Source: Diadema antillarum (lineage: Eukaryota). Taken from it: a stretch of DNA of 64,000 nucleotides. The stretch spans positions 2,170,001 through 2,234,000 of the forward strand of contig NW_027271836.1 of the NCBI RefSeq assembly GCF_040938485.1. Reading direction: 5' to 3'. Under the pieces are notes generated by a model. That model was not told the origin of the DNA. It saw only the letters and a list, made by a program, of their open reading frames with translations, and ran no database searches. Position 1 is the first letter of the stretch. Every line of letters begins with the position of its first letter. Shown piece by piece: positions 25,401-64,000 of the stretch. The position numbers and the translations under genes are program-made.

Positions 25401-28400
25401 GCAGATGCCTCAAATCCTGATATCTCACCAAATGCACCACTTCACTGTTGCATACACGTATGTCAGGATCACAGTTTTTCTGTTGGATCATGTGGGTAAT
25501 GAAAATAGCATTTTTTTTTTTTTGACAGGTATCTTATGGAACGGTCCACGATGTCAGATCAAGTTGAGCCACGAATCGCCACAAAGACCCTTCAATCTGC
25601 TCTTGGCTGGCAGTATGAAGTAACCTCTCCACACAAGGCTACTGCCCAGGTAAGGATCAGCCAGGGATGTATCAGATATTACCTTGGAAGACCAGATGCA
25701 GCTTAATTGATTGTGTATACTTGATTTTACCTTTCATACAATCAGAAGCAATGGACAATGATAGTGGGAGATGTTAAGTGATATGCCATATTTATGGCCA
25801 GTTGAGCATTCATATTGAATTCAATTTCCATTTGATATGTGCTGGTCTTCTCAGTTGTACCATTTGTCTCTACATTGGATTGCTTATCAAAGTTTAAGTT
25901 TGTTGATATTTTGCTCATTTCCAAGAGTAAAGCGGGTGAGGGAATTTCTTAATTTTTCTTCATAGGCATGCTCTATTCAGTTTTTGAGCCAGTTCTTTCT
26001 GGAAAAGAAAAAAAATCAATTCAGTTTGTCATCATGCAGAGCTGAAGCCCCTTTTGACTTCCTGCCTCCATCATGACAATTTTTAGCACTGCCCTCTTTT
26101 GGAGGGAGAGAGGAGGGATAGAATGTTTGAAAACAGGTAGCATGTACTGATATACATATGACTTATTGAGCTATACATCTCGGCATTTAGTGTATATAGT
26201 GACAAACATAGATATTTGTAGCAGTATACCAGCATATAAGCTAGGAGCAGTGTTTGTTGAGCCATTTGGTTTTTTTTTTTTCGATTTTTGTAATTTGTAA
26301 GCAAAATATTTAGATAAATGACTGTAAGTTTATCTTCTCCATTTTCTGTATAGACAATATACCAAAACACTGGTCAGCGTAGGCCGACTGGTACTATGGC
26401 CCCATCTGCAGCATCCAATGAATGTGACTACTGCAGCATCTGCTATGAGGAGCTGAGTGAGATGTGTCCTGGCACCGCTCTGACTGCCTGCAGCCATTGG
26501 TTTTGTGACCAGTGCTGGAGCAGTCACATGATGTCAAGGGTGGAGCAGGGAGACCTCAACATCACCTGTCCAGTAAGTTTGTCACAAAGGGATCATTTAA
26601 CATGAAGCATTGTAGACTCAATCAGACTAGAGAGGAAGATAGTAGAGGAAATAAAAAAAGGAGAAAGCAGAAGAAAAATAAGATAAGAAGAAAAGGAAAT
26701 CAGAGCAAGAAATAGACTATCTGAGCAGACAAATACACAAGATTTCATGCTGTATGTCAGAACACATTTGTCAAAACCATTCTTTTATTTTTACTCCTGT
26801 TGCCAGGGTTACCAGTGCACCAGTCTTGTGGATGAGGTTACCTTGATGTCGTTCCTCCCAGCCACATTCTTCGCTCGTCACCGGAATAGCAAGGTGAATA
26901 CTGCCCTCATGCTGCATCCAGAGCTCAGGTGGTGCCCGAGTCCATCGTGCGGTCGTCTGCTCAAACTGTCCAGTCATAGGACGGATGTTGGTAATGGGGT
27001 TGGGATCCCTGTCAACTGCAGTTGTGGTACATTCTGGTGCTCCGAGTGCAAAGAAGAAGCCCATTGGCCGGCTTCTTGCCAGCAGGCAGAGGCATACCGC
27101 AAAGAGGCAAAAACTTTGCTCAGTAAGTGCCTAGTGACATCTCTATCTTGATTTCAATATTTCAATAGCAATAAAATTTTTGTGCAATAATGGCAAATTC
27201 TTAGACATGAATGATCTCTTCTGTTTTTTACTCAGTTCAGTATTGTGCAGGTAGAACGTGTATTCTTTACTTTCAAAGTTTTGTAGTCTGACTCTTGGCT
27301 TTGCTATCTTATTTGGTGTATTCATATATGATGTATTTCTGATGAATCCATTCTACAAACTTGTATCTTTTATTCTCAACTCATTTGAGCAATCATGTTT
27401 TAGATGAGTAGTGACATGCAATACATTAATTGTTCAGTTTCCTCATCATCAATTCAAAATAAAAATGTAAGAATGAAAAGAAATGTCAAAAGCTGATGTT
27501 CACAAAAATAGACCAATACAAATGTCTTGGCATGCATTTTTATCATGATTACTGTATACGCCGAATATTTCACGAGGTTTTTATTTTCGTGAATTTCGCG
27601 AGTCGGGTGCTATTCGCGAAATTAAAGACACGCGAAAATATTGACTCTGAACCCGATGTGAATATGACGTATGCCTGTACATTTCTCCATTCAGTACAGG
27701 ACTCCACCATCGCGAATTTAACCGCTCTGGAAATTGTCGGGAATTCCTGATTCGCGAAAATTTAGACTCGTGAAATATATGGTGTATACAGTATTTGTTT
27801 GGGAAGCATATTAGGGTACAGAGTAGTCACTCAATTGTGGAAAACATTTGTTCCAAAAAGCGATTTTTTTTTTTCCTTTATAATTGGTGAACTTGCCTTG
27901 CACATTGTTTTGTTGAATAATGTCTTCTGCCTGGTGATCAGGAGAGTGAAACCCAATTGTTTGTGTTACTTTTTAAAATGATATCCTCATGTCATACCTT
28001 AGCTTCAGTGACAGAAAGTGGTTGTGAAAGAATGAGTGTATTCTTCAATAACATACGTTGATGCAGTGGGTTGTGGAAATATTGAAAAAATTTTGACCCC
28101 TCCCTTTTTTAGAGCTTCAAAGCACTCGTGACCGTCCTTTTCGAGTACCAACCAAGAGGTGTCCCCGATGCCACTATCCCATTGAGAAGTCGTATGGCTG
28201 TAACCACATGGTGTGCAAGTGCGGACATGAATTCTGCTGGGAATGCGGCCAAAACTGGGAAAACGGTCATTTCTACTATCGCTGCAAGAATGAGGGAAGG
28301 TGGAAATACCAGGTAAGTTGCCGTCGGATGAGATGCAAGTGTGGTATCATCCTTGAATTTAAACGCATGCTTGTTCGGACTCGTTGGTATGTTACTGCAT

Positions 28401-31400
28401 GTTTTTAAGCTGAATTTGAGACAATCTAGTAGATTCCTGGCTAATTTCCTAAAGTCCTGACACTCATATTTATTTCTAATCAACATCATTTTTTTGTCTA
28501 CCTTCCTTGGACTTTTTAATCATCCTTGGTGCAGTTCTTGTCTTTCTGGAAAATATTACAGAAAACATGAAAAAAGAAAGAAACCTGGGAGGTCAGAGTT
28601 AATGTATGTCTCTGCTGACCCTTCTAAACCTATCAGTTTTTAACTCTGAATACTTTCTTGATCGTCACAAACCTGTATAATTAATCTTAAAGATGTGGTT
28701 AGCATGATGTGTGTTATTTTTTGTTGATTCAAGATTACAGACCATGCTGGTTTCCAGTTCTTCCCGCATAGATGAAGAACAAGACAAACCGCAAATTAAT
28801 TATTATTATTTTTTTTCCATCAAGTGAATATTAGAAATTGATCACAGTAGGCCTTGTTGTTCAGATTTGGCTAATCGAGACTCTTACAGTGTCGCTGAAG
28901 GTTTTTTTTTCCTTCTACTATCTCCTTAATCTTTGATGGTAATCACTCAGTGTGTGTTATAATTTGTCATCAACCATTAGATGTACACCATAGAGCCTGT
29001 GGAGAAGGTAGAGAAGAGTGCACTGGAGCTGGCTGTCATGCATCACAGAAACACTACCTCCGTGGCCTGCCACCGCAGAATGCGGAAAGCCACAAAGTTG
29101 GCATCGCGAATGGTAAGGTCACGTTTTGTATAGCTGCAACCAATTTCAACAACTTTCAGTGTTAATCATTGAGTGAGAATGTATGCACGGGAATGTCAAG
29201 AAAATATGATATGTATCGCAAGCATTATACTATTTGATGGATGATACAAATTTGTGGATGGTTAACTCAAAGATCAAAAACAGCAGCGATATAAGGGTGG
29301 AACAAATATTTTCTCCAATCAAAGGGGTATTGTTTGCAATGTCATACTGTGGAGACACTGTTCACTGCATTAACTTTATTAAAACAATATTTTCATCTAT
29401 TGTTTATTTCAAAGGTATCAGTTCACTTGCAAAATTCACAAAAATAAACCACCACAAGACTTATGGCACATACATACATGATGGAACTTGATGAATATAT
29501 AAACTGATATGTCAAGATGTAGTTAAAGGGGTGGCATTTAGAATTCAGGAAGGGAACAATATTTTTTAAACATTGTTGCACATGAATGAGAAAGTTGATT
29601 GTTATCAAACATTGATAAAGGTATTTCTGTTTTAGATACATGTGCAAACAAAACACTGGAGTGGAAATATACTTGCATATTAATACAGCTGCTTTAGGTA
29701 TTACAAATTTGTTGTTTTTATCCTTCAGATCTCATGGCAAAGGTGGCACATAATTCAATTACATTTTATTTTCAATTTGCTTCTACATGCAGACGCATGA
29801 TGGTGAAAATGGCCATAAATTTGGTGATGCAACTTCATTGCTGTAATGAATTTTGAAACTGTGATGATAGAATATCATATCATGACATTACTTTTATTCC
29901 TTTCTCCCACCCACCCCTTATTCCAGAAGGATCACACCAATACTGGATCAAAGTCTGATTCTGGTAGAAATCTTTCTCACTCTTCCCCATCTGCTGCCAT
30001 GGCAACCAGTGAGATAAACCCTTTGTCATATCATCATGAAATTAAGGGAATCTTCAGAAGCACTGCCACCTTCATTTCAGAGGTAAATGAACTGATATTC
30101 ATTGGGGTTTGATTGTGTAATACTCTGTAGATACATTGTTGATTTATAATTGATTATCATTTATAATATGCTATTCTACACAGAAAGTCCTAGAAAGTCT
30201 GTCTTGTATCATGAATGGAAATAACTGTGCTGGGTGACATATTCTAATGTTTTGGGTGAAAATTACAGTGAAGGCATTGAATATCAATTTGGATAACTGA
30301 AGGATACATGTGGTATGAACAAGCAGTTACAGTGATATTTAACCAAAGAAGCAAATGTCCTCACCGTTATTGTCATCACGATTCAGGAAAGAGTGATGTT
30401 AATTCATTTTGAATCACAACTTTGTCTTATCACGACTTGGTCTATGCCATGAAGACATGGAAACCTACAGCTGTGATTTTGCTTTTTACAGTGAATACAG
30501 TAATTCATGATTATCATAATGTCATGATGTTTCTATTGAAAAGCAAGCAAGCAAACAACAAAGTTAAGTTAAGTGTTCAGGGATTGAAACTGTAATCTGC
30601 TCTTCAGGTGAGATATGAAAAGACATCTTATCCCCATTTCCATTTTTGATTGCCTTTCATTATGCAGGCGGAGTTTGTTCTTCAGCACCTAGAGATCTTC
30701 CTCTCGAATGCCCCACCCGGCAACCAGAAGAGAGTCCTTTCTGAACACAGGGCCAGACTCATCTTTATATTAGATGTCCTTCATAAGGTAGGATTATAGT
30801 TTAATCACAAGCTGTCATGAAACAACACTTATCTAAGAGCTTTTGACTGTTGTTCTTTGAATGTTGACCGAAATGTGTTTTGGGAAATATCTGTATAAGT
30901 TCCTTGCTGAAAACTTTACAGTCTTCAAGTAAGATGTAATGCTATTTTCTGAAGATTTTGAAATTATAATTTGCGGGGTATTGACCATGAAAGCAGTCTT
31001 AGCAGTTTAGATGCATATATCACTTATGTTGACGATATGATTGATCTATTGATCCCTCTTATATACTTGTTACATGATTTAATCTGTGGTCAAATGATTC
31101 AGCATCAAAACAGTTTTCTGTGCGTAAACTCCTACTTCAGACTTTACAAGGGGCTCTATGTACAGAATTAGGAAGGTTTACTTTTAGTCCCTGGCTTGCT
31201 TTACAAATTGCAGATAGTCAATAGCATAATACATAATGCATCCAAAAACGTGAATGATAGAGTATATGTGGCAGGTCAGTTTAGAGTGGAGTTTTTTTAT
31301 GAAGCAGCACTTTAGTGTCCTATTGTTTCTCCATTCTTCCATTCAGATTATAAACAAAGCTGCCAAACGAGACATCCACAAGATCCAGCACCTGTTGCAT

Positions 31401-31487
31401 TGTGGGAAAAGTAGTCTGAAGTGGATCGCCCTGGCTGCAACGCGCCTCTCAGGCACCATGGCTTCAACAGCTGCCAAGGAAGAGTGA
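22487..31487 (+). CDS. Ariadne-like RBR E3 ubiquitin ligase, paralogue A (972 aa). Exons 22487-22685, 23126-23548, 23982-24873, 25529-25649, 26354-26572, 26807-27122, 28113-28312, 28981-29112, 29927-30082, 30668-30787, 31347-31487
   Basis: All junctions are GT-AG and in frame (2919 nt). RING1 [23 protein letters not shown]; [32 protein letters not shown]; RING2 [33 protein letters not shown]. The helical C-terminus is patterned like the Ariadne domain. Confidence 0.92.
27552..27791. mobile_element. Tc1/mariner-type MITE in intron 6 of paralogue A
   Basis: TA TSD; imperfect TIR ctgtatacgccgaatatttcacgag / ctcgtgaaatatatggtgtatacag. Confidence 0.8.
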
Positions 31488-37617: not shown

Positions 37618-40600
37618 ATGGTGCGAAGAGAAGGAACCCGCTTTGGTCTTGCTACCAGCCACAACGTCAGGCGTCTGCCCTTCCCTTACAAAGAACTCTG
37701 CAGCAGGCAGAGTATCGTGGTCAAGACCAAGATTGATGGTGAGGACCATCAGGTCAAGAAATCTGCCAAGGCTGCTGTGAAGAGGCAAATGGAAAGTGGT
37801 GCTTTCAATGTCCAAGGTAATGTGTATGTATGGTCAATTTGGGGTGGCTCACATGATGTCAGATGCCAAGTGTGCATACTATTTGAAAATATTTTTCTCA
37901 TTTACGATGTTTACTAGTACCTGTTTATGTAACTCCTTTCTATTGTCAAGGTATTTCATCTAGTTGAAAATAGGACAGACACGATACATTCATACTTTAT
38001 TCTTAGCAACTATAGAAATCTATGTCTTTTTTTTTTTCTCGTCTGAAATAGCAAAGCTCATGGATGGTATTCTGAAAATCTTCCTAAGTTTCTTCCTAAG
38101 TTTCTTCCTACAAATGTAAGTCAGAAACTTAGGAAGTGCCTAGGAAAGACAAAATTGGTATTCTGAAATTTCTTCCTAGGCACTTCTTAATGCAAATTAG
38201 GCCATCCTTATTCCCGCCCACGTCCTTTCCTAAGCCAATACGAAATGCCGTATCATAAGGAACTAACCGATGTCTGCCAATGACAATCGCATATTACTAT
38301 GACGTAGGGTCAAATACACGAGGGCGCGGCATGTCCCCTTTCTCACGCTCATTTCGCGCATCAAAGTACATGTGCGCGCAATGACTGACAAGCGCGCCTA
38401 TCACGATGCTTGCAGTTTGCTATTCTTAACAACGTACTTAGGACAGGGGTGGAGCTTTCCTAAATATTTTCCTAAAATTCTTTCCTAAGTGCATTCTAGA
38501 ATACCAACTTCTTCCTAAGTCAGAAATTTGCATATTCCCGCCCCCTTCCTAAGTTTCTTCCTAAGTCTACTTAGGAAGAAACTTAAGAAGATTTTCAGAA
38601 TACCACTTAGGAAAAAATCCTGACTTAGGAAGAAATTTCTTCCTAGGAAGGATTTCAGAATACCACCCCATATTTGTGGTGTTCACATTTGCCAAAATGA
38701 AAACCAGCTTCCTCACTTTAGAATTTGTGTTCATTTTCTGTCAACATCTGGTTCAGACATTAGTTTGTTTGTTTAAGTGCAGGAAGAATTGTTTTTGACT
38801 GGCCAGATTTGAAACCATGTGTATGGGAATCTTATTTTTGGAGAAATGAAAATTGTAAAATGTTCCATTTTCATTTTCTTTTCTTTTTTGTAGATGATAC
38901 TGAGCAGAAAGGGATTCACTTCTCCCTCAACAAAGCCAAGCGATGGGAGGTGATAGAAGGAATTAGGGATGAAGAAGAGTACTACGGCAACCGCAGCATC
39001 ATCACGGAGCACCACATGCTGAAGCAGGGCCGAGATGGAAGGAAATGCACAGGAGTCTATGACTCATCAGTCAGTGAGGTTCCAAAGTCCCCAAAGAAAA
39101 AGTACACTGCTGCCACCGATGTCTTTGTGGGACAGCAGACTGGGGATGTGATAGGAAATGATGATGACTTTGGGAAGAAGAATAGATGGAGATCTAGGAG
39201 GAGGAGAAAACATCATGATGAGGAGGATGCTCTTCCAAGCACTGTCTGGTATGATGTTACATTGGCTCCTCCCAGGCAAACCCTCCAGACGTACTGCAAT
39301 CCAGCAGGTAAGGATATTTGTGTGTTTGTATGTGACCTGTGTGGAGGAGAATGTGTCCAACATCGGCAATAACATCCGTATGTAAGTCCATGAGAAATGA
39401 ATTGGAAAGAATGAATGTGGTTGGTATTGAATTTAACTCCGACACATTGAATAGAATTGTGTGGAGTCAAAAACTGCTATGCTGTTTGTCCTTTTGCAGA
39501 AAGATAAAGATTTCTCTTTTAGTATGTAGCTGACCAGCAGACACAAGTGTTTTTAGATTACTCTGGAGGATAAGGCTCAGGAGAACTATTTCATAATCAG
39601 TACTGTGATTCTTTCTTTTTGAATACAGATAGTGGAAAACGAAAGAGAAACAGCAGAAATAGGACACACAAGTTACATCAGTGCAGTATGCAAGAGTTCT
39701 ACTCAGACAGTCAGTGGGAGTTTGATGAGGACTTCACCCAGGAGTGGGGGGAAGAAGAGGAGCAGTACTGGCAAGAAGAGACCAAAGATGCAGAACCCTA
39801 CCAGGTGTGTACTGATGCCCTGGAGGTTCTTGTTGCCAAGGCTATGATGGAACCTCATCGCCATGGAGACCTCAGGAGGACTTCATGGAGACATCAGGAG
39901 GAAAGCCAGCAGGCCTTGGGTACCAAGGATCGAGTCTTTCTTGTTGACAAGGAAGATGTCATGGTGATTGTCGAACCCCAGGTCACTGATGACGTGCAGG
40001 AGTCAACGAGGAAGAAAACCAGGAAGGAGAGGAGGCAAGAGAGACTGGAGGCTGAGAAGGAGACAAAAAGGCAACTGAACGAGATAGAAGAGAAAAAGAA
40101 AATGGAGGAACTTGCTGCCCTTCGCATCAAAGCAAGTGTTGATGTGGCAGTGGAAACCACCAGCATTGCCTTGGATGCACTGAGCGGGAATTTTGGTGAG
40201 AACTACACCGAGGGTCTGTGCACTCCTCGCCGATTTGCCATCAACATCACTGACTCGATCATTGACCGTCTTCAGACCAGTGCCAAAGGTGAAGTCTTGG
40301 CCAGTAGTCTCCTGCAGGCTGGTCATCATGTCTCTCTGATCGTGGACTGCATGCTTGATCCATGGCTGAGTGTAAAAGACGATGACAGTCTGGTAGAAGA
40401 CATCAGAGTAAAGCTGTGTGGGGTGACTGAAGACCGAGAGATGCTGTCAGAGTGCGTGACTGGTCCTGGTGTCTGCAACATCATAGATGTGGTCCATGCT
40501 GTGAGCTCAGGAGTAGCGACATTGCCTTCAGAGAGGTGAGTTCTGTCAACCATTAAACTGTTGCCCAAGGCATATAGCAGTTACCATAGAATTTGTTTGT

Positions 40601-43600
40601 GGCACCTCTGAATCCGTTAGATGATTGGTAAAAAAAAACAAAAAAACAAATATGAATAAAAATAATTGTCAAGGCCTCTATGGATTTAAATCTGTAGAAG
40701 TCACTGCCAGCCAAAATTCAGTCCAAATTGTTAACAAAGATGTAATATTAGACATCAGAACAGCACAAACATTTAACTCAGAATTTATGGAGATTTTGCT
40801 ATTAACTGATTTCAATATTTCTTCTGTTACAATATATTTTCTCTCTGCAGATATTTGTTTGAAAATTCAAACCACTCTTTGCCTTGTAAGCCAGCTTTCG
40901 CCATGGAAACCACCCAGTCTACGCTAGGCTGGAGATATGATGTCACCAATCCACACAAGGCAGTCCAGAAGGTAAATACAGAACTTTTCAAAAAGAAAAA
41001 AAAATGTCCCCTTTAAAAAGGTAATTTTGATATCATACAAGACAAAGTATGTCAATAATACAAGAGGAGCAGCTGCTTTGTGGCAGCTCCATAATTCTAC
41101 TTAATATTTGATTATGATTACTATTACTATTATTATTATTTATTTAATTTTCATTTTTTATTTCTATTTTTATTATTTCTTTTTAGGTAGAAGGCATTAT
41201 CTCCTCCCAGAACACAAAATGTTCCAGTTTCAGGCTGTTTTCTAATACACTTATATTTGTTTTTGCACTTTTTGGTCATGCCACATTTGTGATGGTTGTC
41301 ATATTGAATCTTTGATAATTACTATGTAAATTTTTCTTTTCTTTTTTGCTCTGTTTAAATTTATAGGCCCTACAGCAGAAAGATGCAGAAGACTCTGAGA
41401 CTGTTGACAGTACCCCATCTGTATCATCCAGTGAGTGTGGATATTGTAACATCTGCTATGAGGAGCTGAGTGAGAATTGTCCTGGCACCGCTCTGACTGC
41501 CTGTAGCCATTGGTTTTGTGACCAATGCTGGAGCAGTCACATGATGTCAAGGGTGGAGCAGGGAGACCTCAGAATTGCCTGTCCAGTAAGTATTCCCAGT
41601 CTTCTCCTATACCAATATCTATCCTTACTCAGAGAACCCAGTACTACATTATGATACCTTCATTTGCCAAGCATTTCCACCATGGCACAAACAAATGTTT
41701 GATCTGTATAGATGTCGATTTTAATTATTTTTCCTTCTCATTCTTGACAGGGTTACCAGTGCACCAGTCTTGTGGATGAGGTTACCATGATGTCATTCCT
41801 CCCAGCCACATTCTTTGCTCGTCACCTAGCAAACAAGGTGAATACTGCCCTCATGCTGCAGCCAGAGCTGCAGTGGTGCCCCAGTCCATCATGCGGTCGT
41901 CTGCTCACAGTGGCCAGTCAGAAAACAGATGTTGGCAGTGTCGGCAAGAGAGGCGTGGTTCCAATCAGCTGTGAGTGCGGCTCATTCTGGTGCTCCGAGT
42001 GCAAGAAGGAAGCTCATTGGCCAGCCTCTTGTAAGCAGGCAGAGGTGTACCGCAAGAAGGCCGCCAAACTTCTGCGTGAGTTGACTAAGTTTGTCTGATT
42101 CTCATTCACTTAAGTATCAAATGTTATTGGCATTGCAAATTAATCTTTCACTACTGTGTGATGATGTCCCTTGGCTCACTGAGAACAAGGCAATTAAGCT
42201 ATTGCATGAGATCAGTTGAAATTAACCTGAAATGTGTGCATACAGTGGATGCAGAAATAGTAGCAAAACACATTTGATAGTGAAGTTGAAGTTACATGGG
42301 ATAACTTATGCAAAAGATGTGAATTTTCAAGGTTTTGATAAAATTTTGAGCTGTCATAGCTGGATGTGAAGTCTACAACAATATGTGATGCTTAGAGTAA
42401 TATTTCCCTTGCCCTCTGAAGGAGCTTTAAAGCCAAATGCACTTTGACCCCTGTTACACATGAAAGGTTGCTCAAGGCCTGCTTTTTGTAGCCAACCTGA
42501 GGCCGCTTTGTGAGCTATTCTACACATGAACTTTGGGCCAACTCAAGCAAAAGCACAACAGCGTTTTACATGTATATGGTTTGGACATAATACTATGGTT
42601 CACATGGCCCCTCTGCATAAGGTCATGTGACTAGTCAATAGCGCAGCTGTGAAAAATGGCCTCGGGCTGGATGCCATTTTCACAAAGCTGGCCAGCCTCA
42701 GACCACCTGAAGAGGTGGCCTGAAATAAAGTCAACCCGATACTGGCCCAAGATTTGTGTGACTGTTGACACATACAAAAGGAAGCTGACGTTAGGCTTGT
42801 CCAAGGGCGGCCTTGCGTTAGCTTCTTCGTATGTGTAACAGGGGTATATCTTTGTTTTTGGTGGGAAAATGAAACTTGCATGACTTGTTTCCCAAACTCA
42901 AAAGAGTTCCAGAGGGGGTGAAAAATACTAATAGATGTTAAATCAGAATACAAATATACTTTTTATGCTCTCTTTTCAATCATATTTTCTTCATTTCAAG
43001 TTTCTGCAAAGCTTAAATCACCATTGCTTCTAACAAAAGGAGAATTAACCTTATGTTGTGCCTTTTTTTTTTGTCTCTCTCTATTGTCTCTTTAGGTTCG
43101 AGGCCTCTCAATGGCGACCTCACTGTGCGTGTGCCAACCAAGAGATGCCCTAATTGCTATTATCCCATTGAGAAGGAATATGGCTGTTACTTCATGCAAT
43201 GCAAATGTGGACATCAATTCTGTTGGGACTGTGGAGAAAAAGCAGATCACTACCGTCACCGCTGTGTGAGGAAGATTTGGAGCACTCAGGTACATTACAA
43301 AACTCTTTCTAAATACTCATTTTGACATTTGCATTTTGCGACTGATACGCTTAATATTGGCCAGGGCATTTTGACTTAAAGAAAATGTTCCAAAAAATCT
43401 CAGATAACACGCCCATGATTCCTTTAGCCAATTTGCCAGAAGCCATTTTTATGTATTTTTGTTGCTGAATTCTTGCAAGCTTGATGTTTTCACTCTGTGG
43501 CATGCAGACCAGAGATGAAATATTTTGCGATTTTTATCATCTTGCTGTAGGCAACTAGCTTTCTTGTGTTTGCATGATTGATTGTGCAAATGACTTGAAT

Positions 43601-46058
43601 AAGCCAGTTCACAACTATGTCATGTGCACATTATTACTACAAATGACCTCTCTTTTGTCTCACTTGGTTATGCACTTAATAATCCTTTTCAAAGTGACAC
43701 AATGCATAAGCTTTCCCGACAATTTATGGAATTTGTTTTATAAACACAAGATGAACTTGCCCAGACTGGTCCACTGATCAACCAACACTTGGGGAAGCAT
43801 CCAATCTTATGTTTTGCTTTGAATGCATCAACAAACTTTTGTTGTTGTTGTTGCTTTGTTAACATTACCAAATACCAGGCTTGTTGTCAGGTGGATGTGT
43901 GTTGGCAATGACATTATAAGTGACCACCTGGTGTTTTGTTGTACCTCATCAACTGCAGGTATACACGATCAGACCGGTTGACTTAGTGGTCAAGAGCACA
44001 GTGGAACTGGCTGCTGGACATTACAAGCAGAGAACACACTTTGCCTGTCATCGCAGAATCAGGAAAGCAAGGAAGCTTGCATCCAGAGTGGTATGTCAGA
44101 ATCTCTTGATTTGTAATGGTTTCTTGATCTCAACGGTTGTAAATCTCATGTGGCACATCTCATCCTGCTCTTCATCTCGTAATTGCTTCACTTTTTTTCC
44201 CCTTACAAATTACCTTCCTGATTTAATTTTGAAACAAATGTCTCTAGGCAGTATAAAGAATGACATGAAGAATACAGGTTGAAACAACATTGATTGAGGT
44301 GAAATTCAACCAAATTTGCAGCAGAACAAACAAACAAACAAATAACTGACCACAGCTCCGTATTGTGGCACCAAAAAGAGACAAAAAAATAATGTGCGTC
44401 TATATGTCTGTTGGTTCTGCAGGTTCCCCCCCCCCAAAAAAAAAACAAAAACCCAACAACAACAAAACAAAACACACACACACATGAGAGAGATTACTGT
44501 GTGAGTATGTCAGTCTCGAGTTCTAATCATCGTGCTATGTCATACCTCATGTCTTACTTCTCATCTTCCTGCACCACAGAAATGTGAGAGCAAGGAGGAG
44601 TCAGATTCTGATGACACAGTCAGTCTCTCATCCTCATCGTCATCGTCATCCTCATCTGTTTCCATAACAACCAGAGATAGACGACCCTCGCCTTTCCTCC
44701 AGAAGATCAGGGGGATTTTGAAAGAAAGTGCCGACTTTCTGTCAGAGGTGAGACAATTGATGTCCTTTACCTTTGCTGACTACTGCGTACTTTGAAAGAA
44801 GAAATTTGAAATGAAACATTTTGTGCATTGAAAAGCACTCTGTGAGTGCAGACCTCTGCCAAGCAGCTCATTTCCACACATAAACACTTGTGCTAAAATG
44901 GCCCTCTTTCCCAATGATAAAAAACCTTTCTAGTTAGTACAGTGTTTCTACCTTTAGATAGCTTCTTGCTGTGCCTTGAGCACGTATTCAGTGTGCGTAT
45001 GTGCACCTCAAGGATGTGCAGCCTGAATTTCCACAATGTTTGCCCAAAGAATCCTTTAAAAGATTGTAAATTTATTCTCGGATCCAGATGGTGATCCGGA
45101 TTAGTACCAAAATTCAAATCATCTGTTCCTTGTGTCATCAACTTTACTCGAAAATGTAATTAATATCTATTCATAACTTTTTGGAGTAGACAAAACCAAT
45201 GCCAATGGAAGCATAACTTTGGCAGATGTAATCAGTTGAGTAATGTCAGATGATCTGACACATGTGATTCACATCTCATTTTTTTCCAAACAGGCTGAGT
45301 TTGTACTCGAAAACCTGGAGATCTTCCTGTCTAATGCCCCACCCAGCAGCAGGAAGACAAACCTCTCAGAGCACAGGACCAGACTCATCTATATCACAGA
45401 TATCCTACACAGGGTAAGATTGAAAAGAAATGAATTTAATGAATGGAAAGGAATACAGAAAATGGATAGTCCCTTCATACCCTCACAATAAAACAACATA
45501 ATGTATGCCAGTATGATTTGTAGCTGTAAAAGATGTCTCCAACTAACAAGGTATATTTTGGGTTTCTGAGTGAAATATGCTCAATGCAGGTACACCAGTC
45601 AGGATTCTACATCGAACATGTATTAATGAATTTGGCCATCCTTGTATGAATTTAATACCTGTGTGTTTGTGGAAAAATGAAAACAAAATTTTGTGTTATG
45701 TGATATTCATATATTGATCCATTGCATAGTTAGCTCTCCTGTTAAGCTTTCACTGAACCAAATATTAACTTGACTTGCACAAGGTCGGTCTAACTCACCA
45801 CTGTAGTCCCCCTATGTAATTGCAGTTCTCTGTTGAATGTTGAGTTTGTGCGTATTTTCTGTGCAAGGACTTGTTTGTGATTCTGTGTATTTGTTTTTTT
45901 GCCCCTCTCCACTTGTACAGATATTCAATGAAGAAGACAAACTTGACATCAACAAGGTCCAGCATCTGTTGCATTGTGGGAAGAGCTGTCTGAGCTGGGT
46001 GGCTCTGAGTGCAGTGCACCTCACCAATGTAATGGCATCCAATGCCAGTGAAGAGTAA
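37618..46058 (+). CDS. Ariadne-like RBR E3 ubiquitin ligase, paralogue B (978 aa). Exons 37618-37816, 38894-39307, 39629-40535, 40851-40971, 41367-41585, 41751-42075, 43096-43289, 43959-44090, 44580-44747, 45294-45413, 45921-46058
   Basis: Same 11-exon structure and intron phases as A, open throughout (2937 nt). An in-frame TAA 9 nt upstream of the ATG fixes the start. RING2 reads PTKRCPNCYYPIEKEYGCYFMQCKCGHQFCWDC. Confidence 0.9.
38062..38668. mobile_element. 607-bp PIF/Harbinger-like non-autonomous element in intron 1 of paralogue B
   Basis: TIR gg(a/g)tggtattctgaaa; 3-bp TSD CAT; multiple ttcttcctaag/cttaggaagaa subterminal repeats; empty site in the homologous intron of C (~55740-55770). 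Confidence 0.8.
42447..42845. mobile_element. ~400-bp MITE in intron 6 of paralogue B
   Basis: Perfect 15-bp TIR acccctgttacacat; absent in C (flanks align at ~62130-62170); no TSD seen. Confidence 0.65.
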
Positions 46059-55371: not shown

Positions 55372-58300
55372 ATGGTACGAAGAGAAGGAACCCGCTTTGG
55401 TCTTGCTACCAGCCACAATGTCAGGCGTCTGCCCTTCCCCTACAAACAACTCTACAGCAGGCAGAGTATCGTGGTCAAGACCAAGATTGATGGTGAGGAC
55501 CATCAGGTCAAGAAATCTGCCAAGGCTGCTGTGAAGAGGCAAATGGAAAGTGGTTCTTTCAATATGAAAGGTAATGTGTTTGTAAAATGCTGAGTGTATA
55601 CCATGTTTCATGGTATTGTTCCAGTATGACTAAATTGTTACCATACTTTAGTGTTGTTTTACTCTTGTCTACTGTAAGACATTTTATCACAGTATGATGA
55701 ATGTACTCACCCAGCTAGATAAAGCTACTTTTTTTTTTCTGAAATGGCAAAGTTCGTGTGTGTGATGTTAACATTTGCTAACATGAAAGCCAGCTTCTAC
55801 ACCACCATATTTTGTGTTCATTTACGGTCGACACTGGGCTCAAATATTAGTCTCTTTGTTGAAATGCAGCATGAATCGCTTTTTGACTGGTAGTTTGGAA
55901 CCAAGTGTATAGTGAATCTTTTTTATTTTCAAGGAATGAAAATTGTAAACTGCACTGTACCATTTTCATTTTTTGTTTTTAGACGATACTGAGCAGAAAA
56001 GGATTCATTTCTCCCTCAACAAAGCCAAGCGATGGGAGGTGATAGAAGGAATTAGGGATGAAGAAGAATACTACGGCAACCGCAGCATCATCACGGAGCA
56101 CCACATGCTGAAGCAGGGCCATGATCAGAGGAATATCACAGGAGTCTATGACTCGTCGGTCAGTGATGCCCCAAAGTCTCCAAAGAAGAAATACACTGCT
56201 GCCACCGATGCCTTTGTAGGACAGCAGACTGGGGATGTGATAGGAAATGATGATGACTTTGGGAAGAAGAATAGATGGAGATCTAGAAGGAGGAGAAAAC
56301 ATCATGATGAGGAGGATGGTGTTCCAAGTACTGTCTGGTATGATGTTACGTTGGCTCCTCCCAGGCAAACCTTCCAGACGTACTGCAATCCTGCAGGTAA
56401 GGGTAGTTGTGTGTTTGTGTACATACATTGTACATGTGTTTGTGCGTAAATGCTAAAGTTGCAATGATTTGGGGGACTTGCATTTGATTTTTCGAATGTT
56501 TTAGATTACTCTTGAGGCTCAGGCTCATCAAAGCCGTTTTATAATCAGCACTTTATTTGTTTTCCTCAAATACAGATAGCGGAAAACCAAAGAGAAACAG
56601 CAGAAATAGAACACGGAAGTTCCATCAGTGCAGTATGCAAGAGTTCTACTCTGACAGACAGTGGGAGTTTGATGAGGACTTCACCCAGGAGTGGGAGGAA
56701 GAAGAGGAGCAGTACTGGCAAGAAGAGACCAAAGCTGCAGAACCCTACCAGGTGTGCACCGATGCCCTGGAAGTCCTTGTTACCAAGGCAATGATGGAAA
56801 CTCATCGCCTTGGAGACCAGAAGCATCGCGATGTACATCAGGAGGAAAGCAAGCAGACCTTGGGTACCAAGGATCGAGTCTTTCTTGTTGACAAGGAAGA
56901 TGTCATGGTGATTGTTGAACCCCAGCTCACTGATGACGTGTCAAAGTCAACAAGGAAGAAAACCAGGAAGGAGAGGAGACAGGAGAGGCTGGAGTCTGAA
57001 GAGAGGGAGGCAAAAAGGCAAGAAAAGGAGCTGAAAAAGAAAAAGGAAATGGAGGAACTTGCTGCTCTTCGCATCAAAGTGAGTGTTGATATGGCAGTGG
57101 AGACCACTAGCATCGCCTTGAATGCACTGAGCAGGAATTTTGGTGAGAACTACACTGAGGGTCTGTGCACTCCTCGCCGATTTGCCATTAACATCACTGA
57201 CTCGATCATTGACCATCTTCAGACCAGTGCCAAAAGAGACGCCTTGGCCAGTAGCCTCCTGCAGACTAGTCATCATGTCTCTCTGATAGTGGACTGTATG
57301 CTTGATCCATGGCTGAGTGTAAAAGAGGATGACGGGCTGGTAGAGGACATCAGAGTGAAGCTGTGTGGGGTGACTGAAGACCGAGAGATGCTGTCAGAGT
57401 GCCTGACTGGTCTTGGTGTCTGCAGCATCTCAGATGTGGTCCGTGCTGTGAGCTCAGGAGTAGCGGCATTACCTGCAGAGAGGTGAGTACTCTCAACCAT
57501 TCTTAAAAGAGCATCTACAAGTAGTTTGTAACATTGCCTTTTTGTTTGATAAGGCTTTAGACACGCTTCGCTGCAGCTGCATATGGTAGAAATTTGCTTG
57601 AGTTTGCCAACAGGGTACTCTTTAAAATGTTTAAACTGGTGCCCCAGTTATGTATCAATGACCCATGAAGCTTGTGTGTGGCATATTTAGATCTCAAATC
57701 AAAGAAAAAGGTAGAGAAAACAATTGTCAAGGACAGTGGAAATCAGTGGAAATCACTGCCAGTCAAAATTCATTTCAAATTTCATGCAAATATGTTATCA
57801 TATGAAATTTCCACTGCTGTAATTGTCATATGGTTACCAGAAGACAAACATCTCAATAGTCAAACTAATAGATTGATTTGTAAACATGAATAAAACATAA
57901 CCCATTCCTGATTATCTCATAAAATGTTGCATGTATTTTGAGGCTTAATGTCCTTAATTCTGGTTAATACCTCACTTTGCTTTGCCAGTATGTGGTGCAT
58001 TCAGTATGGTTTTCTGCCTCCTGGAAATTCATCTTTGAACACCAAACATCAGTATCAGCATCTATTTTCTCTTTGCAGATATTTGTTTGAAAAGTCAAGC
58101 TATTCTTTGGCTGGTAAGCCAGTTTTTGCCATGGAAACCACTCAGTCTACACTAGGCTGGAGATATGATGTCACCAATCCACACAAGGCAGTCCAGAAGG
58201 TAAATACAAAACAGAATACAGAAATACAGAAAAAAAATGGTACCTTATTAATCATGCTCAAAGGTAATTTTGATACCATGGATACCAACATACTTAATAG

Positions 58301-61300
58301 TACTAAAGAAGCAACTGCTTTGTGGCAGGTACAGTACCCTATTTGAGTGATTATGTTGTGTGTATATATATATATAAATATTCATTTTTTTATAATTATC
58401 ATTTTTTTTAATGAAAAGCAGTTTCTGTTTCCAGAACACATAATGTTCAACTCTCAGGCTGTTTTCTGATAAACTGTTTCGTGTTTGCCCTCTGATTTCA
58501 TGCCATGTTTGTCATAGTTGCCATAGTGAATCTTTGATAGATACTCTTTGTTTTTTCTTTTTGTTTTGTTTGTTTTGTTTAAATCCATAGGCTCTACAGC
58601 AGAAAGATGCAGAAGACTGTGAGACTGATGACAGTACCCCATCTGTATCATCCAGTGAGTGTGGATACTGTAACATCTGCTATGAGGAGCTGAGTGAGAA
58701 TTGTCCTGGCACCGCTCTGACTGCCTGTAGCCATTGGTTTTGTGACCAGTGCTGGAGCAGTCACATGATGTCAAGGGTGGAGCAGGGAGACCTCAGAATT
58801 GCCTGTCCAGTAAGTATTCCCAGTCTTCTCCTATACCAATATCTATCCTTACTCAGAGAACCCAGTACTACATTATGATACCTTCATTTGCCAAGCATTT
58901 CCACTATGGCTCAAACAAATGTTTGAACTGTAGAGATGTCGATTTTAATTATTTTTCCTTCTCACTCTTGACAGGGTTACCAGTGCACCAGTCTTGTGGA
59001 TGAGGTTACCATGATGTCATTCCTCCCAGCCACATTCTTTGCTCGTCACCTAGCCAACAAGGTGAATACTGCCCTCATGCTGCAGCCAGAGCTGCAGTGG
59101 TGCCCCAGTCCATCATGCGGTCGTCTGCTCACAGTGGCCAGTCAGAAAACGGATGTTGGCAAGGGGCGCATGATTCCAATCACCTGCGAGTGCGGTTCAT
59201 TCTGGTGCTCTGAGTGCAAGAAGGAAGCTCATTGGCCAGCGTCTTGCGAGCAGGCAGAGGCGTACCGTAAGAAGGCCACCGAACTCTTGCGTGAGTTGCC
59301 CATTAAGTTTGTCCAATTCTCATTTCCTTGTACCAAATGTCATTGGTATAGGAAATTAATCTTCACTGCTGTGTGATGGTGTCCCTTGTCTCATGGAGAA
59401 TTAGGCACTTAAGGTATTGTATGACTTCAAGGTGTATTTTCCCCAAACATATACCAAGGTACCAGCTATGTAGATGCAAAAAATACAGGGTGTATCAAAA
59501 AAAGGTAAACCAATTTTAGAGGGCTACTATTTCATAATTGTCAGCTATGGAGAGCACAATTTTGGTTGTGAGGAAAGACAAACTCTTCCTCTTTCCATTG
59601 GTACCTAATTATGTTGACAAATGTCATGCATGACTGAGCACATGAACTTAAAAGGCAACAATGACAAATTGCACTTTTTCCAAGTTTGTGTGTTATTGTG
59701 AAATAACAATGCATGTCTCACTGCATGGATGAGATCTGTCAATAAAAGTGGCCAAATAGGCCAGCCTGTTCGAATGCAGGTTCGTGTTAACCCTAACTAG
59801 GCCGGGCTATTTAGGTAGTTGATAGAGCCGGGGGGGCCTCCCAGGCCCCCCCTCCAGATCTCGGCCGTCGACCGCGCGATCGCGACGAAAATTGGCACAC
59901 ACATTGCCTATGATGTAATCTAAAATACTATGAAGTTAATTTTTCAAAAAATCATAATTTATGCTAAATTATAATAATTTATGCATGATGATGCATAAAA
60001 TCAGACTAATTGGCATAAATCACAAAATAAAGCTCAAAACAGGCACATTTTTTGTGTGAATATTCTTTTTAGTGTCCTTAGCAAATGTAATTTAAAAAAA
60101 ATTGTGATATCAGAAAAAATTCTTAAGTATTTTATTGTTTTTTTTGAATTTCTTATGTATTTCTTTGTTTTTTCGACTTTATGTTTTTCATTGTTTTTAC
60201 GATGAAATTTGTCCGCGACATCGCTCCGAACAAGAAAATATGTTATTCATTGATTTTAATCAATAAAACACCCAAATAATCATGCTTTTATGAAATTTGC
60301 CAGTAAGCACAGTTTGCATTGAAATTGTACACGAATTAACGTTTTTGAGCAATTTTTGGTCTGACATGCATGTACATATTTACGCGTAACTTCGGAACCG
60401 CACGCCCGGGCGTCGCAAATTTGGTGTCAAAAGATGCGGGAGACTCGAAAGAAAAAAGTCATGAAACGTCGCGGCAATAGCTTTTTGCGATGGCGATACA
60501 TCACGCGGAACGTCGAGGGGGGGCCTCAGACCCCCCCCCCCCCCCCCGGCCTAGTTAGGGTTAAGAGTTTCTCCTCACATTTTATTATTATTGTTATTGT
60601 TATTATTATTTTATTATTAATTGTTGTTATTATTATTATTTCATTATTCATTGTTATTATTATTATTATTGTCATCATTATCATTATTATCATACTCTTT
60701 ATTTGTTTCATACCAAGCACATTATTATATACAATATTTCATAAAAAACATGCGAATATACATTGTACAAACATAATATATTGAACAAGAAAAAACAAGC
60801 TCACACTTACACTTAAAAATGCCTTCAAGGAGATCTAACAGACATCCACATAATTTCTGTGATTTATAAATTTAGAATAAGCAAAGTTCAATATTTTGGT
60901 ATGGTTCATAACCTTTAAAGGTAGGGAATCCCATTTGCACGCCTTAAATGAAGAGTTGTATAAATACAGTGGTATGTTGAAGAGAATATCATTTTAGAAA
61001 CTCCCATAAAGTATTGAAAGTGGAAGGCAACATTTAGTACATTTTTTTGACGGTTAGATTTTGAATTGAATTGTTTTCGGGGCTCACCGTAAATTCCAGT
61101 ACATTACTAGGCTACCTTTGCAGACCCATGTACTGCATGTGTGTCCATCATGTATATTTTGTGAAGAAAGTTCATCAACACTTACAAACATTTCTATATA
61201 CATTCTTACCACACACTCTATATGTTATTACATCAGCTCTTGTACTTTTAGATTTGTTTTTTATATATCACAAATACAGAAGAATGCAACAAAAAGGCTT

Positions 61301-63821
61301 AAGTGTGGCTGACACACAAAACTACTGAGCAGTTGAGTTTTGTGCATTATTCAAATTTTAGATAACTGTTGACTTCCAAATTTCTAAGCAGTGGCCTAAG
61401 CAAGTCGCCTGAGGTTCATATTTAATGTTTTGCTGCATTTTGGGAGGTCTGTAAAAGGTATCCCCTACCTTTAACATGGCCACCTGTTCGATAACTTGGT
61501 CACTCCCACAGAGGCCAATCCACACAGTCTATTTTCTCTGTTCATATTCAACACATAGCTCGCAGCGACAATCCATGTCTTGAAAATGATGAGAGAAAAA
61601 TGGATTATGATTTAACGTTTATAGGAAGGACCAAGTTATCAACAAGGTGACCATGTTGAAGGTTATGAACCATAAAAGGTTAGAAGAAACCCTAAACACG
61701 AACCTGCAGGCTGGCCTAATCATTTGACCAGTTTCACTGACAGATCTCTTCCATGTAGTGAGACATGCATTGTTCCTTCACAATAACATGCAAACTTGGA
61801 AAAAGTGCAATTTGTCATTGTTGTCTTTAAAGTTCATGTGCTCAGTCATGCATAACGTCTGTCAACACATTTAGGTATCACTGAAAAGAGGAATACAATG
61901 TAGTTCCTCTTTCCTCACAACCATCGTTGCACTCTCCATAGCTGACAAGTTTAAAATAATAGCCCTCCAAAATTGGATTACCTTTTTTTCAATACCCACT
62001 TTAGTATAATTACACATCAGTGAAGTTTGAATTTTCAATGTTTTGATAAAAATCCATGTACAGTTATTGTCGGATATGAAGATTACAACAATTTGTGAAG
62101 TGAAGAGTAATATTCCAGTAGCCTTTGAAAGGAGGTATACAAATGCTCTTTCAGTGTGCTGGTAAAATGAAAATAATGTTGTTTTTTTGAGATGTAGGCA
62201 AAAGCTACCATTGATGTTTCATCATGGCAGACACAAATAGATATCCTTTGTATGTACCCTTTCCATGCATTCTTTCTTACTTTCAGATATCTGCAAAGAT
62301 TAATTAAACCATCTTTGCTAGGAACGAAAAGTTAACCTCTTTTTTTTTTTTCTCTCTCTCTCTATTTTCAATTTAGGTTTGAAGCAATCCAGTGATGACC
62401 TCACTGTGGTAGTGCCAACCAAGAGATGCCCAAATTGCTACTATCCAATTTATAAGGAATACATGTATGGCTGTTACTTCATGTTCTGCAAATGTGGACA
62501 TGGCTTCTGTTGGGACTGTGGGAAGAGAGTGATCCACTATGGCCACCACTGTGAGGGGAAGATTTGGATGACTCGGGTACATTCCAAACTCTTTCCACAT
62601 ACTCATTTTGACGTTGCAAATGTGTGGCTGATAGAACTGACATTGGCACAATCATATTGGCACATCCAGGGCATTTTGACGTAGAGCAAATATTCCAAAA
62701 AAGTCTAGAGTTACTAACCCACCAATGGTTTTAGCCCATTGCCAGAAATCATACTTATGAATATGTATTGCTTTGTAAAAGAATTCTTACGAGCCCAATA
62801 TTTCATACTGAAATGCAGATAAGAGATGAAATATTGGGCAAATCCTTTATATTACTATAGGCAACTTGCTGCCTTTTTTTTTTACACACAAAGTTCTGCA
62901 AATGTCCTAAATTATAAAAGTCATGAAGCTTGGCAAATTTTTGTCTTATGCCCTTTATAACCCTATGTAAAACAAAACAAAAAACAAAACAAAACAAAAC
63001 TCTGTGTCAAGTTTCTTGACTTTTTTTAAACACTATTCTGTGAAGTCATTTCATTATTTTGGACCCACTTTGGGGAATGCACAATGACTGGATAAGGCTA
63101 ATGCTTCTTGAATGTAAGATTTGAGAATGGGTCCTGCCAGGTTGAACATTTCTTGGACAAGACAAGAGTGACCCTCTGTGTTATCTGTACACTTACAGGT
63201 AAAAGTAGATGTCAATTGATAGCAATTCAGAGGGAAATGATAATTGCAGAGTGCTCCTACGGGACAGTGCTGATATTTCAGGGGCTTCTCTTAGTAAATA
63301 AAATCATCTCTTATTATGACAACTGTTCTGATGTTGATTATGGTGATGATGGTGATGATGATTATACTAATGATAATGATAATGATTTTACTAATACTAC
63401 TACTACAACTACTACTAATGATAATATTAATGATTGTTATTGTCATCATTATTATCATAATCACCTTCGTCATTGCTTATCTATCACTATAAATAGTATC
63501 AGCATTACGTTGTTATTAATCTATTGATGTATACATATTTATACATTTTATTGATTTCAATAATTGTTGCTATCATGAATATCCTACTATTGTTACCAGT
63601 AACATTCTGTATGGTAGTTGACTCAAGTATCAGATACAAAGTATATCGAATGAGTAACCAGCAGATTTATTGTGTCTCATCAACTGCAGGTTTACAAGAT
63701 CATACCTGTTGACTTAGTGGTCAAGAGCACGGTGGAACTTGCTGCTGAACATTACAGGCAGAGAACACACTTTGCCTGTCATCGCAGAATCAGGAAAGCA
63801 AGGAGGCTTGCATCCAGAGTG
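55372..63821 (+). CDS. Ariadne-like RBR E3 ubiquitin ligase, paralogue C, partial (exons 1-8; continues past the right edge). Exons 55372-55570, 55983-56396, 56576-57482, 58079-58199, 58591-58809, 58975-59290, 62377-62576, 63690-63821
   Basis: Exon-for-exon homologue of B, open over 836 codons. RING2 reads PTKRCPNCYYPIYKEYMYGCYFMFCKCGHGFCWDC. Confidence 0.88.
59791..60560. mobile_element. 770-bp piggyBac-like MITE
   Basis: TTAA TSD at 59787-59790 and 60561-60564; perfect 16-bp TIR ccctaactaggccggg. Confidence 0.9.
60579..60898 (-). mobile_element. Probable retroposon 3' end with AATAAA and a (TAA)n tail
   Basis: About 110 bp of ATT-type repeat followed by unique AT-rich sequence; it interrupts the fold-back arm. 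Class is inference. Confidence 0.45.
60919..61470. mobile_element. 552-bp Kolobok-like MITE
   Basis: TTAA at 60915-60918 and 61471-61474; TIR aggtagggaatcc / ggtatcccctacct. Confidence 0.8.
63310..63530 (+). repeat. GAT/AAT/ACT trinucleotide low-complexity tract in intron 7 of paralogue C
   Basis: Direct inspection. Confidence 0.8.
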
Positions 63822-64000
63822 GTATGTCAGAATCTCTTGATTTGTAATGTTTTCCAAATCGCAAAGGTTGTAAATCTCATGTGGCGCATCTCATCCTACT
63901 CTTCCTCTCCTGATTGCCTCTGGGTTTTTTTTTCCCTCAAAATTTATTTTCTGATTTCATTTTAACCCTAAAGGTGGGGGGGGGGGGGGGGGTGGGGAGC

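Follow-up and report, generated by a model that had tools for sequence, protein, structure and literature searches.

Retention of the catalytic cysteine and loss of the active-site histidine in two genes of a tandem Ariadne-type RBR ligase array in Diadema antillarum

Introduction

What becomes of a RING1-IBR-RING2 (RBR) ubiquitin ligase when the histidine two residues after its catalytic cysteine is lost and the cysteine is kept? The question is raised by a stretch of 64,000 nucleotides from Diadema antillarum (RefSeq assembly GCF_040938485.1, contig NW_027271836.1, positions 2,170,001 to 2,234,000 of the forward strand), hereafter the window, which contains three intact genes arranged in tandem on the same strand. 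The genes, here called A, B and C, each encode an Ariadne-type RBR E3 ligase of about 975 amino acids in 11 coding exons. In an original prediction, made from the letters of the window, the RING2 active site was read as GCNHM in A and GCYFM in both B and C. It was suggested that the change had arisen once before B and C split, and that B and C may have acquired a different acceptor chemistry, trap ubiquitin, or act as decoys or regulators of A. A Cys-His-Glu/Gln triad has been described for the RBR ligases, but it is neither universal nor defining (PMC7458406).

Results

The RING2 active site in the three genes

The three active sites are located in frame, inside GT-AG bounded RING2 exons of intact genes, at the following positions:

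28196-28210, plus strand: active site of gene A, GGC TGT AAC CAC ATG, read as G-C-N-H-M and aligned to C357/H359 of ARIH1
43182-43196, plus strand: active site of gene B, GGC TGT TAC TTC ATG, read as G-C-Y-F-M, with Phe opposite H359 of ARIH1
62469-62483, plus strand: active site of gene C, GGC TGT TAC TTC ATG, read as G-C-Y-F-M and aligned to GCLHM of CUL9

Comparison with the PDB using phmmer showed that GCNHMVC in A has a core identical to GC(357)NH(359)MVC in ARIH1, its best sequence match (E = 1.7e-16), and that GCYFMQC in B falls on the same stretch of ARIH1 with Phe facing His359 (E = 2.6e-9). The best match to GCYFMFC in C is GCLHMTC in CUL9 (3e-5), and the match to ARIH1 is at 1.8e-4. 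Because these alignments place Phe there, we conclude that Phe occupies the position of the catalytic histidine. The catalytic cysteine in the beta2-beta3 loop of RING2 is present in all three genes, where the Cys of G-C-x-x-M faces C357 of ARIH1 (A and B) or the cysteine of the CUL9 GCLHM motif (C). B and C also keep every zinc ligand of RING2 (CxxC, C-x-C, CxxC, His and Cys), and the ligand cysteines and histidines of the entire RBR region are complete in A, B and C. The original prediction was thus exact in its three 15-nucleotide strings and their coordinates, and right that B and C are open genes (with intact GT-AG models) that retain the cysteine and the RING2 zinc ligands and lack the histidine found at H359 in HHARI, H433 in Parkin and H887 in HOIP. 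The strings DHYRHR and IHYGHH, to which it pointed as possible sources of a substitute histidine, are also present as quoted.

The loss of the histidine does not stand alone. The residues of the putative triad read C-H-E in A, C-F-Q in B and C-F-G in C, and a Cys-His-Glu/Gln triad is found in A only. In the nuclear magnetic resonance description of RING2, W379 is juxtaposed to H359 in HHARI, as is W453 to H433 in parkin (PMC3772753). The equivalents of these positions are as follows in the two Diadema species and in the relative from Lytechinus variegatus:

D. antillarum A: Cys+1 N, Cys+2 H, triad position E, Trp position W
Lytechinus: Cys+1 N, Cys+2 H, triad position D, Trp position F
D. antillarum B: Cys+1 Y, Cys+2 F, triad position Q, Trp position A
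D. antillarum C: Cys+1 Y, Cys+2 F, triad position G, Trp position V
D. setosum B: Cys+1 Y, Cys+2 Y, triad position E, Trp position A
D. setosum C: Cys+1 Y, Cys+2 Y, triad position G, Trp position V

To judge from these alignments, the change is not isolated, as the tryptophan that buttresses the histidine and the glutamate of the triad are altered too, and in B and C the active site is remodeled throughout its second shell, around a retained cysteine and zinc scaffold. Gene C furthermore carries an in-frame insertion of 6 nucleotides (Met-Tyr) at 62463-62468, directly ahead of the catalytic Gly-Cys, which creates the perfect palindrome ATACATGTAT (listed at 62460-62469). The insertion is present in C of the window and in the D. 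antillarum model P0152, and since P0159, a copy on another D. antillarum contig, lacks it, it is an indel polymorphism that either segregates or distinguishes haplotypes.

Domain architecture and predicted fold

The proteins are predicted to consist of an N-terminal region, a coiled coil, an RWD/UBC-like domain, RING1-IBR-RING2 and an Ariadne-like helical domain, in that order. The zinc-binding modules RING1, IBR and RING2, which mark membership in the RBR family, are present in this order, and Pfam identified zf-C3HC4/RING in exon 5, IBR in exon 6 and IBR_1/IBR_2 in exon 7 of gene A, and likewise in P0151 (the D. setosum ortholog of B), P0153 (the D. antillarum RefSeq model of A) and P0001 (the D. 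setosum ortholog of C). An AlphaFold2 model of P0151 (residues 560-977), based on an alignment of 90 sequences, has a mean predicted local distance difference test score (pLDDT) of 88.4, a predicted template modeling score (pTM) of 0.76, and scores of 72-95 in the RING2 blocks, with four long helices after RING2. In Foldseek, this model matches ARIH1 and ARIH2 best among PDB entries, with some 405 aligned columns that span their full RBR-Ariadne chains (E 1e-16 to 1e-14), and because of this alignment we consider the helices C-terminal to RING2 to be an Ariadne-like domain. The assignment is a structural one, as the Pfam Ariadne model gave no match.

The N-terminal 569 residues of A were modeled with lower confidence (pLDDT 67.6), and neither a PDB match in Foldseek nor a Pfam domain was found for this region. 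Within it, residues at about 310-368 were modeled as a long helix or coiled coil, and residues at about 378-505 (exon 3, 23982-24873), which were confidently modeled, resemble the RWD/UBC-like folds of the GCN2 RWD domain, the RNF25 RWD domain and the central domain of FANCL, with modest Z scores of 6-7. In RNF14/ARA54, a protein of about 470 amino acids, the RBR likewise comes after an RWD domain, but both a long N-terminal region and an Ariadne-like C-terminal domain are lacking. The likeness is one of architecture and lies in the RWD/UBC-like fold (Z about 7, modest) that the proteins studied here have upstream of the RBR. As a separate observation, residues at about 15-300 of A (exons 1-3) weakly resemble several proteins in structure: the product of the C. 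elegans infection response gene irg-2 (E 1.9e-3), a protein with a CABIT domain from a nematode, and RBR proteins of molluscs and nematodes in their N-terminal parts.

Origin of the histidine loss

The ortholog of A in D. setosum (P0156) reads GCNHM, as does the relative in Lytechinus variegatus (P0154), which branches outside the Diadema clade of A and (B,C). The D. setosum orthologs of B (P0151; TAC TAT) and C (P0001; TAC TAC) both read GCYYM. Since the A-orthologs and the Lytechinus outgroup retain the histidine and B and C in D. setosum also lack it, the loss is derived and can be placed as one event on the stem of B and C. Most simply, it would have occurred by a change of CAC to TAC (Tyr), which is a single step from His. 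Only D. antillarum has Phe (TTC), which is present in both of its paralogs, and D. setosum B and C have Tyr, so that under parsimony GCYFM itself is not ancestral to B and C. To account for Phe in both D. antillarum paralogs, one has to assume that an A-to-T change occurred twice in parallel or that a very short tract was converted. The suggested single origin before the split of B and C therefore holds for the loss of the histidine, but not for the GCYFM motif.

Family-wide lability of the Cys+2 position

We searched 1.84 billion representatives at 50% identity, using the three IBR exons as a profile, and obtained 506 proteins at E <=1e-3. A search for close homologs yielded 5-7 near relatives, and the family counts given here rest on the survey of representatives. 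This set may hold a few RBR proteins from outside the family, such as ANKIB1-like proteins, but the subset sharing the N-terminal domain (n=47) gave the same picture. Many of the proteins are 850-1100 amino acids long, and the relative position of their RBR is the same. The members that were sampled, all annotated as uncharacterized, belong to echinoids, a crinoid, hemichordates, gastropods and a nemertean. A literature search retrieved no paper on an invertebrate Ariadne-type RBR family of about 1000 amino acids.

The catalytic cysteine is invariant in this family (118/118 RING2 sequences). The zinc cysteines of RING2 are invariant or nearly so (115/118 for the last one) in alignments of 118 RING2 sequences and 90 rows that extend from the RBR to the C-terminus, and the same applies to Gly-1, Met+3 and the Lys of the E-K motif among the representatives. 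The Cys+2 position is occupied in 112 RING2s by His (46), Tyr (22), Phe (10), Ser (8), Asn (6), Gln (4), Trp (3) and other residues, and His is present in 18/47 RING2s whose proteins also share the N-terminal region of A. When 90 RBR-Ariadne regions were arranged in a maximum-likelihood tree, with the scored columns excluded, at least 17 switches between His and other residues and 42 residue changes were required at Cys+2. Because His is a minority state at Cys+2, has been switched at least 17 times and sits beside an invariant cysteine, we conclude that loss of the histidine with retention of the cysteine is a common and recurrent state in the family, of which B and C are best read as one instance rather than a unique innovation.

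In raw counts, His co-occurs with Asp, Glu or Gln at the triad position (19/36 versus 4/54, Fisher 2.5e-6), but a test on phylogenetically independent pairs showed no significant co-variation (median p 0.375). Since the raw association was lost under phylogenetic control, we do not claim a coupling between the histidine and the triad residue. Co-variation of His with the Trp position was weak (raw p 0.04) and likewise not significant when controlled.

Selection and gene conversion

Orthologs from D. antillarum and D. setosum were compared by the Nei-Gojobori method to estimate omega, the ratio of non-synonymous to synonymous divergence. Whole-gene omega is 0.32 for B (Fisher p 1e-11 for a value below 1) and 0.38 for C (Fisher p 4e-7), showing that both genes are under purifying selection. 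In the RING2 exon of B, 8 synonymous and 10 non-synonymous changes separate the two species (omega 0.26). Neither stops, frameshifts nor broken splice sites were found in five genes of the B/C clade from the two species.

The RING2 exon differs from the rest of the array in its synonymous divergence (dS). Between B and C (43096-43289 versus 62377-62576), dS is 0.48 in D. antillarum and 0.56 in D. setosum, against 0.17-0.19 gene-wide (p 0.008 and 0.0003), which is 2.5-3 times that in the rest of the gene in both species. RING2 thus seems to have escaped a homogenization acting on the rest of the array. In the first coding exon (22487-22685, 37618-37816, 55372-55570), the DNA identity of the three genes is about 94%, with a dS of 0.05 between A and B, whereas dS between A and B exceeds 1 in most other exons, which points to gene conversion or a strong constraint at the nucleotide level. 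Similarly, dS between A and B is 0.38 in the RING1 exon and 0.63 in the IBR exon (26354-27122 versus 41367-42075 and 58591-59290) and much higher in the flanking exons, and B and C can be aligned through the intron around RING1 (40832-42209 versus 58060-59424, 85%), in what looks like a conversion tract covering RING1. The low dS of exon 1 and of the RING1 exon, seen even when A is compared with B, leads us to suggest that gene conversion is homogenizing the 5' end of the array and RING1. As an aside, N-termini like that of the first coding exon (MV-x-K/R...G) recur in distant members of the family.

Gene models and organization of the array

The window has a G+C content of about 37% and contains 3 short runs of N. 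Gene models were built from open frames and GT-AG junctions, comparison of the paralogs and annotated relatives, with exon coordinates set by hand and then checked. Exon phases are conserved among A, B and C, internal stops are absent and all junctions are AG/GT. The models are as follows:

22487..31487, plus strand: gene A, 972 amino acids in 11 coding exons, with a canonical RING2 (GCNHM) and RING, IBR and IBR_1 placed on exons by Pfam
Exons of gene A, plus strand: 22487-22685, 23126-23548, 23982-24873, 25529-25649, 26354-26572 (RING1), 26807-27122 (IBR), 28113-28312 (RING2), 28981-29112, 29927-30082, 30668-30787, 31347-31487
37618..46058, plus strand: gene B, 978 amino acids, intact
Exons of gene B, plus strand: 37618-37816, 38894-39307, 39629-40535, 40851-40971, 41367-41585 (RING1), 41751-42075 (IBR), 43096-43289 (RING2), 43959-44090, 44580-44747, 45294-45413, 45921-46058
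55372..63821, plus strand: gene C, at least 836 amino acids, intact up to the end of the window, with its last three exons past base 64000
Exons of gene C, plus strand: 55372-55570, 55983-56396, 56576-57482, 58079-58199, 58591-58809 (RING1), 58975-59290 (IBR), 62377-62576 (RING2), 63690-63821

The protein of gene A is about 99% identical to the D. antillarum RefSeq model XP_071490268 (P0153) and that of gene B is 86% identical to P0151, a member of a syntenic array in D. setosum, while gene C matches P0152 and P0159 in D. antillarum and P0001 in D. setosum. No fourth paralog was found elsewhere within the window. The array in D. setosum (GCA_964275005.2, OZ188187.1; L001:1-1901, 10001-18356, 25344-28356; also L002) has the same A-B-C order and orientation, and the triplication is therefore older than the split of the two Diadema species. 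Upstream of the array, an open frame of 170 amino acids on the minus strand (13274-13786), rich in Ser/Glu and in runs of Lys/Arg, may be an exon of an unrelated gene for a nuclear protein.

Discussion

We favor the hypothesis, which in our judgment has about an even chance of being correct, that B and C still work as ligases, which form a thioester and discharge it in a base-independent or partner-assisted way, most likely to amines; both the competence to form the thioester and the mode of discharge are what we infer. A duplication in the Diadema lineage separated A from the ancestor of B and C, in which the second shell of RING2 was then remodeled. The histidine at Cys+2 was replaced by Tyr in this ancestor and later by Phe in D. 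antillarum, the tryptophan that packs on the histidine by Ala in B or Val in C, and the triad glutamate by Gln in B or Gly in C, while the catalytic cysteine, the Gly and Met that flank it and every zinc ligand were kept. In the favored scenario, ubiquitin from the E2 would still be loaded on the RING2 cysteine of B and C as a thioester. Discharge would then proceed without a general base in cis, probably to amines, and either be slower or make use of an acceptor that is positioned or activated by the substrate or a partner, as in RNF216.

The HOIP H887A and HHARI H359A mutants still form the thioester between E3 and ubiquitin, with an impaired discharge (PMC7458406, PMC5462532). Since loading in HHARI and HOIP does not need the histidine and the cysteine is invariant across the family, B and C probably keep the thioester step. 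The best precedent for a working RING2 without the histidine is RNF216 (TRIAD3), which is an active RBR ligase (PMC7458406), although it belongs to another RBR subfamily with a zinc-finger insert in RING2 and no Ariadne domain, and its sequence match to RING2 of A is weak (E about 2.5e-3). The closest known architectures are those of ARIH1/HHARI and ARIH2/TRIAD1, in which RING1-IBR-RING2 is also followed by a helical Ariadne-like domain and the catalytic cysteine is situated in the same loop. However, the approximately 570 N-terminal residues of the A/B/C family are unrelated to the acidic and UBA-like region of the ARIH proteins, the identity is about 21%, and B and C lack the equivalents of His359, W379 and the glutamate. 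Members of the Ariadne subfamily (ARIH1/ARIH2/CUL9/ANKIB1-like) are characterized by an Ariadne domain that is autoinhibitory and by their activation through neddylated cullin-RING ligases.

Several observations speak against this hypothesis. The Parkin H433A mutation impairs transthiolation as well, so that both steps are hit (PMC7458406) and competence to form the thioester is not guaranteed in B and C. Retention of the cysteine over a short timescale (dS about 0.1-0.5) is in itself weak evidence, and it is the invariance across the family that weighs most. Moreover, the RING2 exon of C has accumulated 8 non-synonymous changes and 1 synonymous change since the species split (omega 1.8), a ratio that is not significantly different from that in the rest of the gene (p = 0.08). 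Together with the polymorphic two-residue insertion beside the cysteine, this ratio could reflect a relaxed constraint on C. The substitution at Cys+2 would then be nearly neutral, or a sign of early decay in redundant duplicates, and it fits with such an explanation that C has Tyr in place of the Glu that is typical of the family in the I-E-K motif and that the E-values of the PDB matches to RING2 weaken from A to B and C. We nevertheless consider relaxed constraint unlikely, and mainly a concern for C, given the intact reading frames and splice sites in both species, gene-wide omega values significantly below 1, the low omega in RING2 of B and the retention of the cysteine and all zinc ligands. 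Another explanation is that B and C load ubiquitin or bind the E2 and partners of A but discharge poorly, and thereby act as traps, decoys or dominant modulators of A, or as pseudo-enzymes. The H359A and H887A mutants do trap ubiquitin on the E3, the losses in B and C extend to the tryptophan buttress and the triad glutamate, and since A hardly differs from B/C in the RING1 exon and the first coding exon, binding of the E2 and the N-terminal contacts are probably common to all three. Yet a cysteine that is never lost, in a family where about 60% of the members lack the histidine, argues for productive catalysis in most of the latter, and the activity of RNF216 and the purifying selection on the whole gene, reaching into the Ariadne-like domain, make such a role improbable.

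A more far-reaching possibility is that B and C ubiquitinate non-lysine acceptors such as Ser/Thr, sugars, lipids or other non-protein molecules, as does HOIL-1 (RBCK1), which forms ester links. Like B and C, HOIL-1 has an aromatic residue (Trp462) instead of His at Cys+2 (PMC9853177), about half of the residues other than His at this position in the family are aromatic, and in marine invertebrates the family has expanded and evolves fast. However, HOIL-1 uses a distal residue, His510, provided by a C-terminal binuclear zinc cluster (PMC9853177, PMC11962058), and B and C have neither such an insert nor an extra cluster of cysteines, but a RING2 of standard spacing (CxxC...C-x-C...CxxC...H...C). 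The H510A mutant of HOIL-1 loses ubiquitination of Ser and sugars and gains activity on Lys, because hydroxyls need activation by a base more than amines do (PMC11962058), and such a base is not evident in B and C. A candidate is a histidine two residues before the last zinc cysteine, which is specific to the clade, being present in 4/4 of the B/C sequences and absent in A. By positional homology it corresponds to Y387 of HHARI, which contacts zinc site II and not the catalytic loop (PMC3772753), and it is weakly enriched in members that lack the Cys+2 histidine (13/70 versus 4/48). Nor is the hydroxyl of Tyr needed, as D. antillarum has Phe where D. setosum has Tyr. The case for a special chemistry in the original prediction is weakened by these comparisons, given that the Cys+2 histidine is a minority state in the family, that RNF216 is active and that HOIL-1 needs its base for hydroxyls; ester chemistry is thus less likely than first suggested, and we regard a change of acceptor in B and C as doubtful indeed.

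The replacement seen in B and C is not exceptional. RBR active sites that lack the histidine are already known, and in the invertebrate Ariadne-type family to which A, B and C belong they are the majority state. By themselves, B and C therefore reveal no new mechanism, and their value lies in the matched comparison that they offer within an undescribed family. The known exceptions to the triad, RNF216 and HOIL-1, have each been mechanistically informative. Here, a single array holds three related genes, one with a canonical triad and two in which the histidine, the tryptophan buttress and the glutamate have been replaced, with orthologs in a second species that differ by Tyr versus Phe. The family as a whole represents a natural test set for what the histidine contributes to RBR catalysis and how RBR ligases without it discharge ubiquitin. 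A broader, rather speculative and in our view improbable hypothesis is that the Cys+1/Cys+2 dipeptide, enclosed by an invariant Gly-Cys and Met, is a hotspot of diversification in a large, tandemly expanding RBR family of echinoderms, hemichordates, molluscs and nemerteans, with paralogs that differ in acceptor chemistry or specificity, possibly for innate immunity against non-protein targets. If this were true, B and C versus A in Diadema would be a recent and tractable natural experiment, with a matched, histidine-containing control gene next to them.

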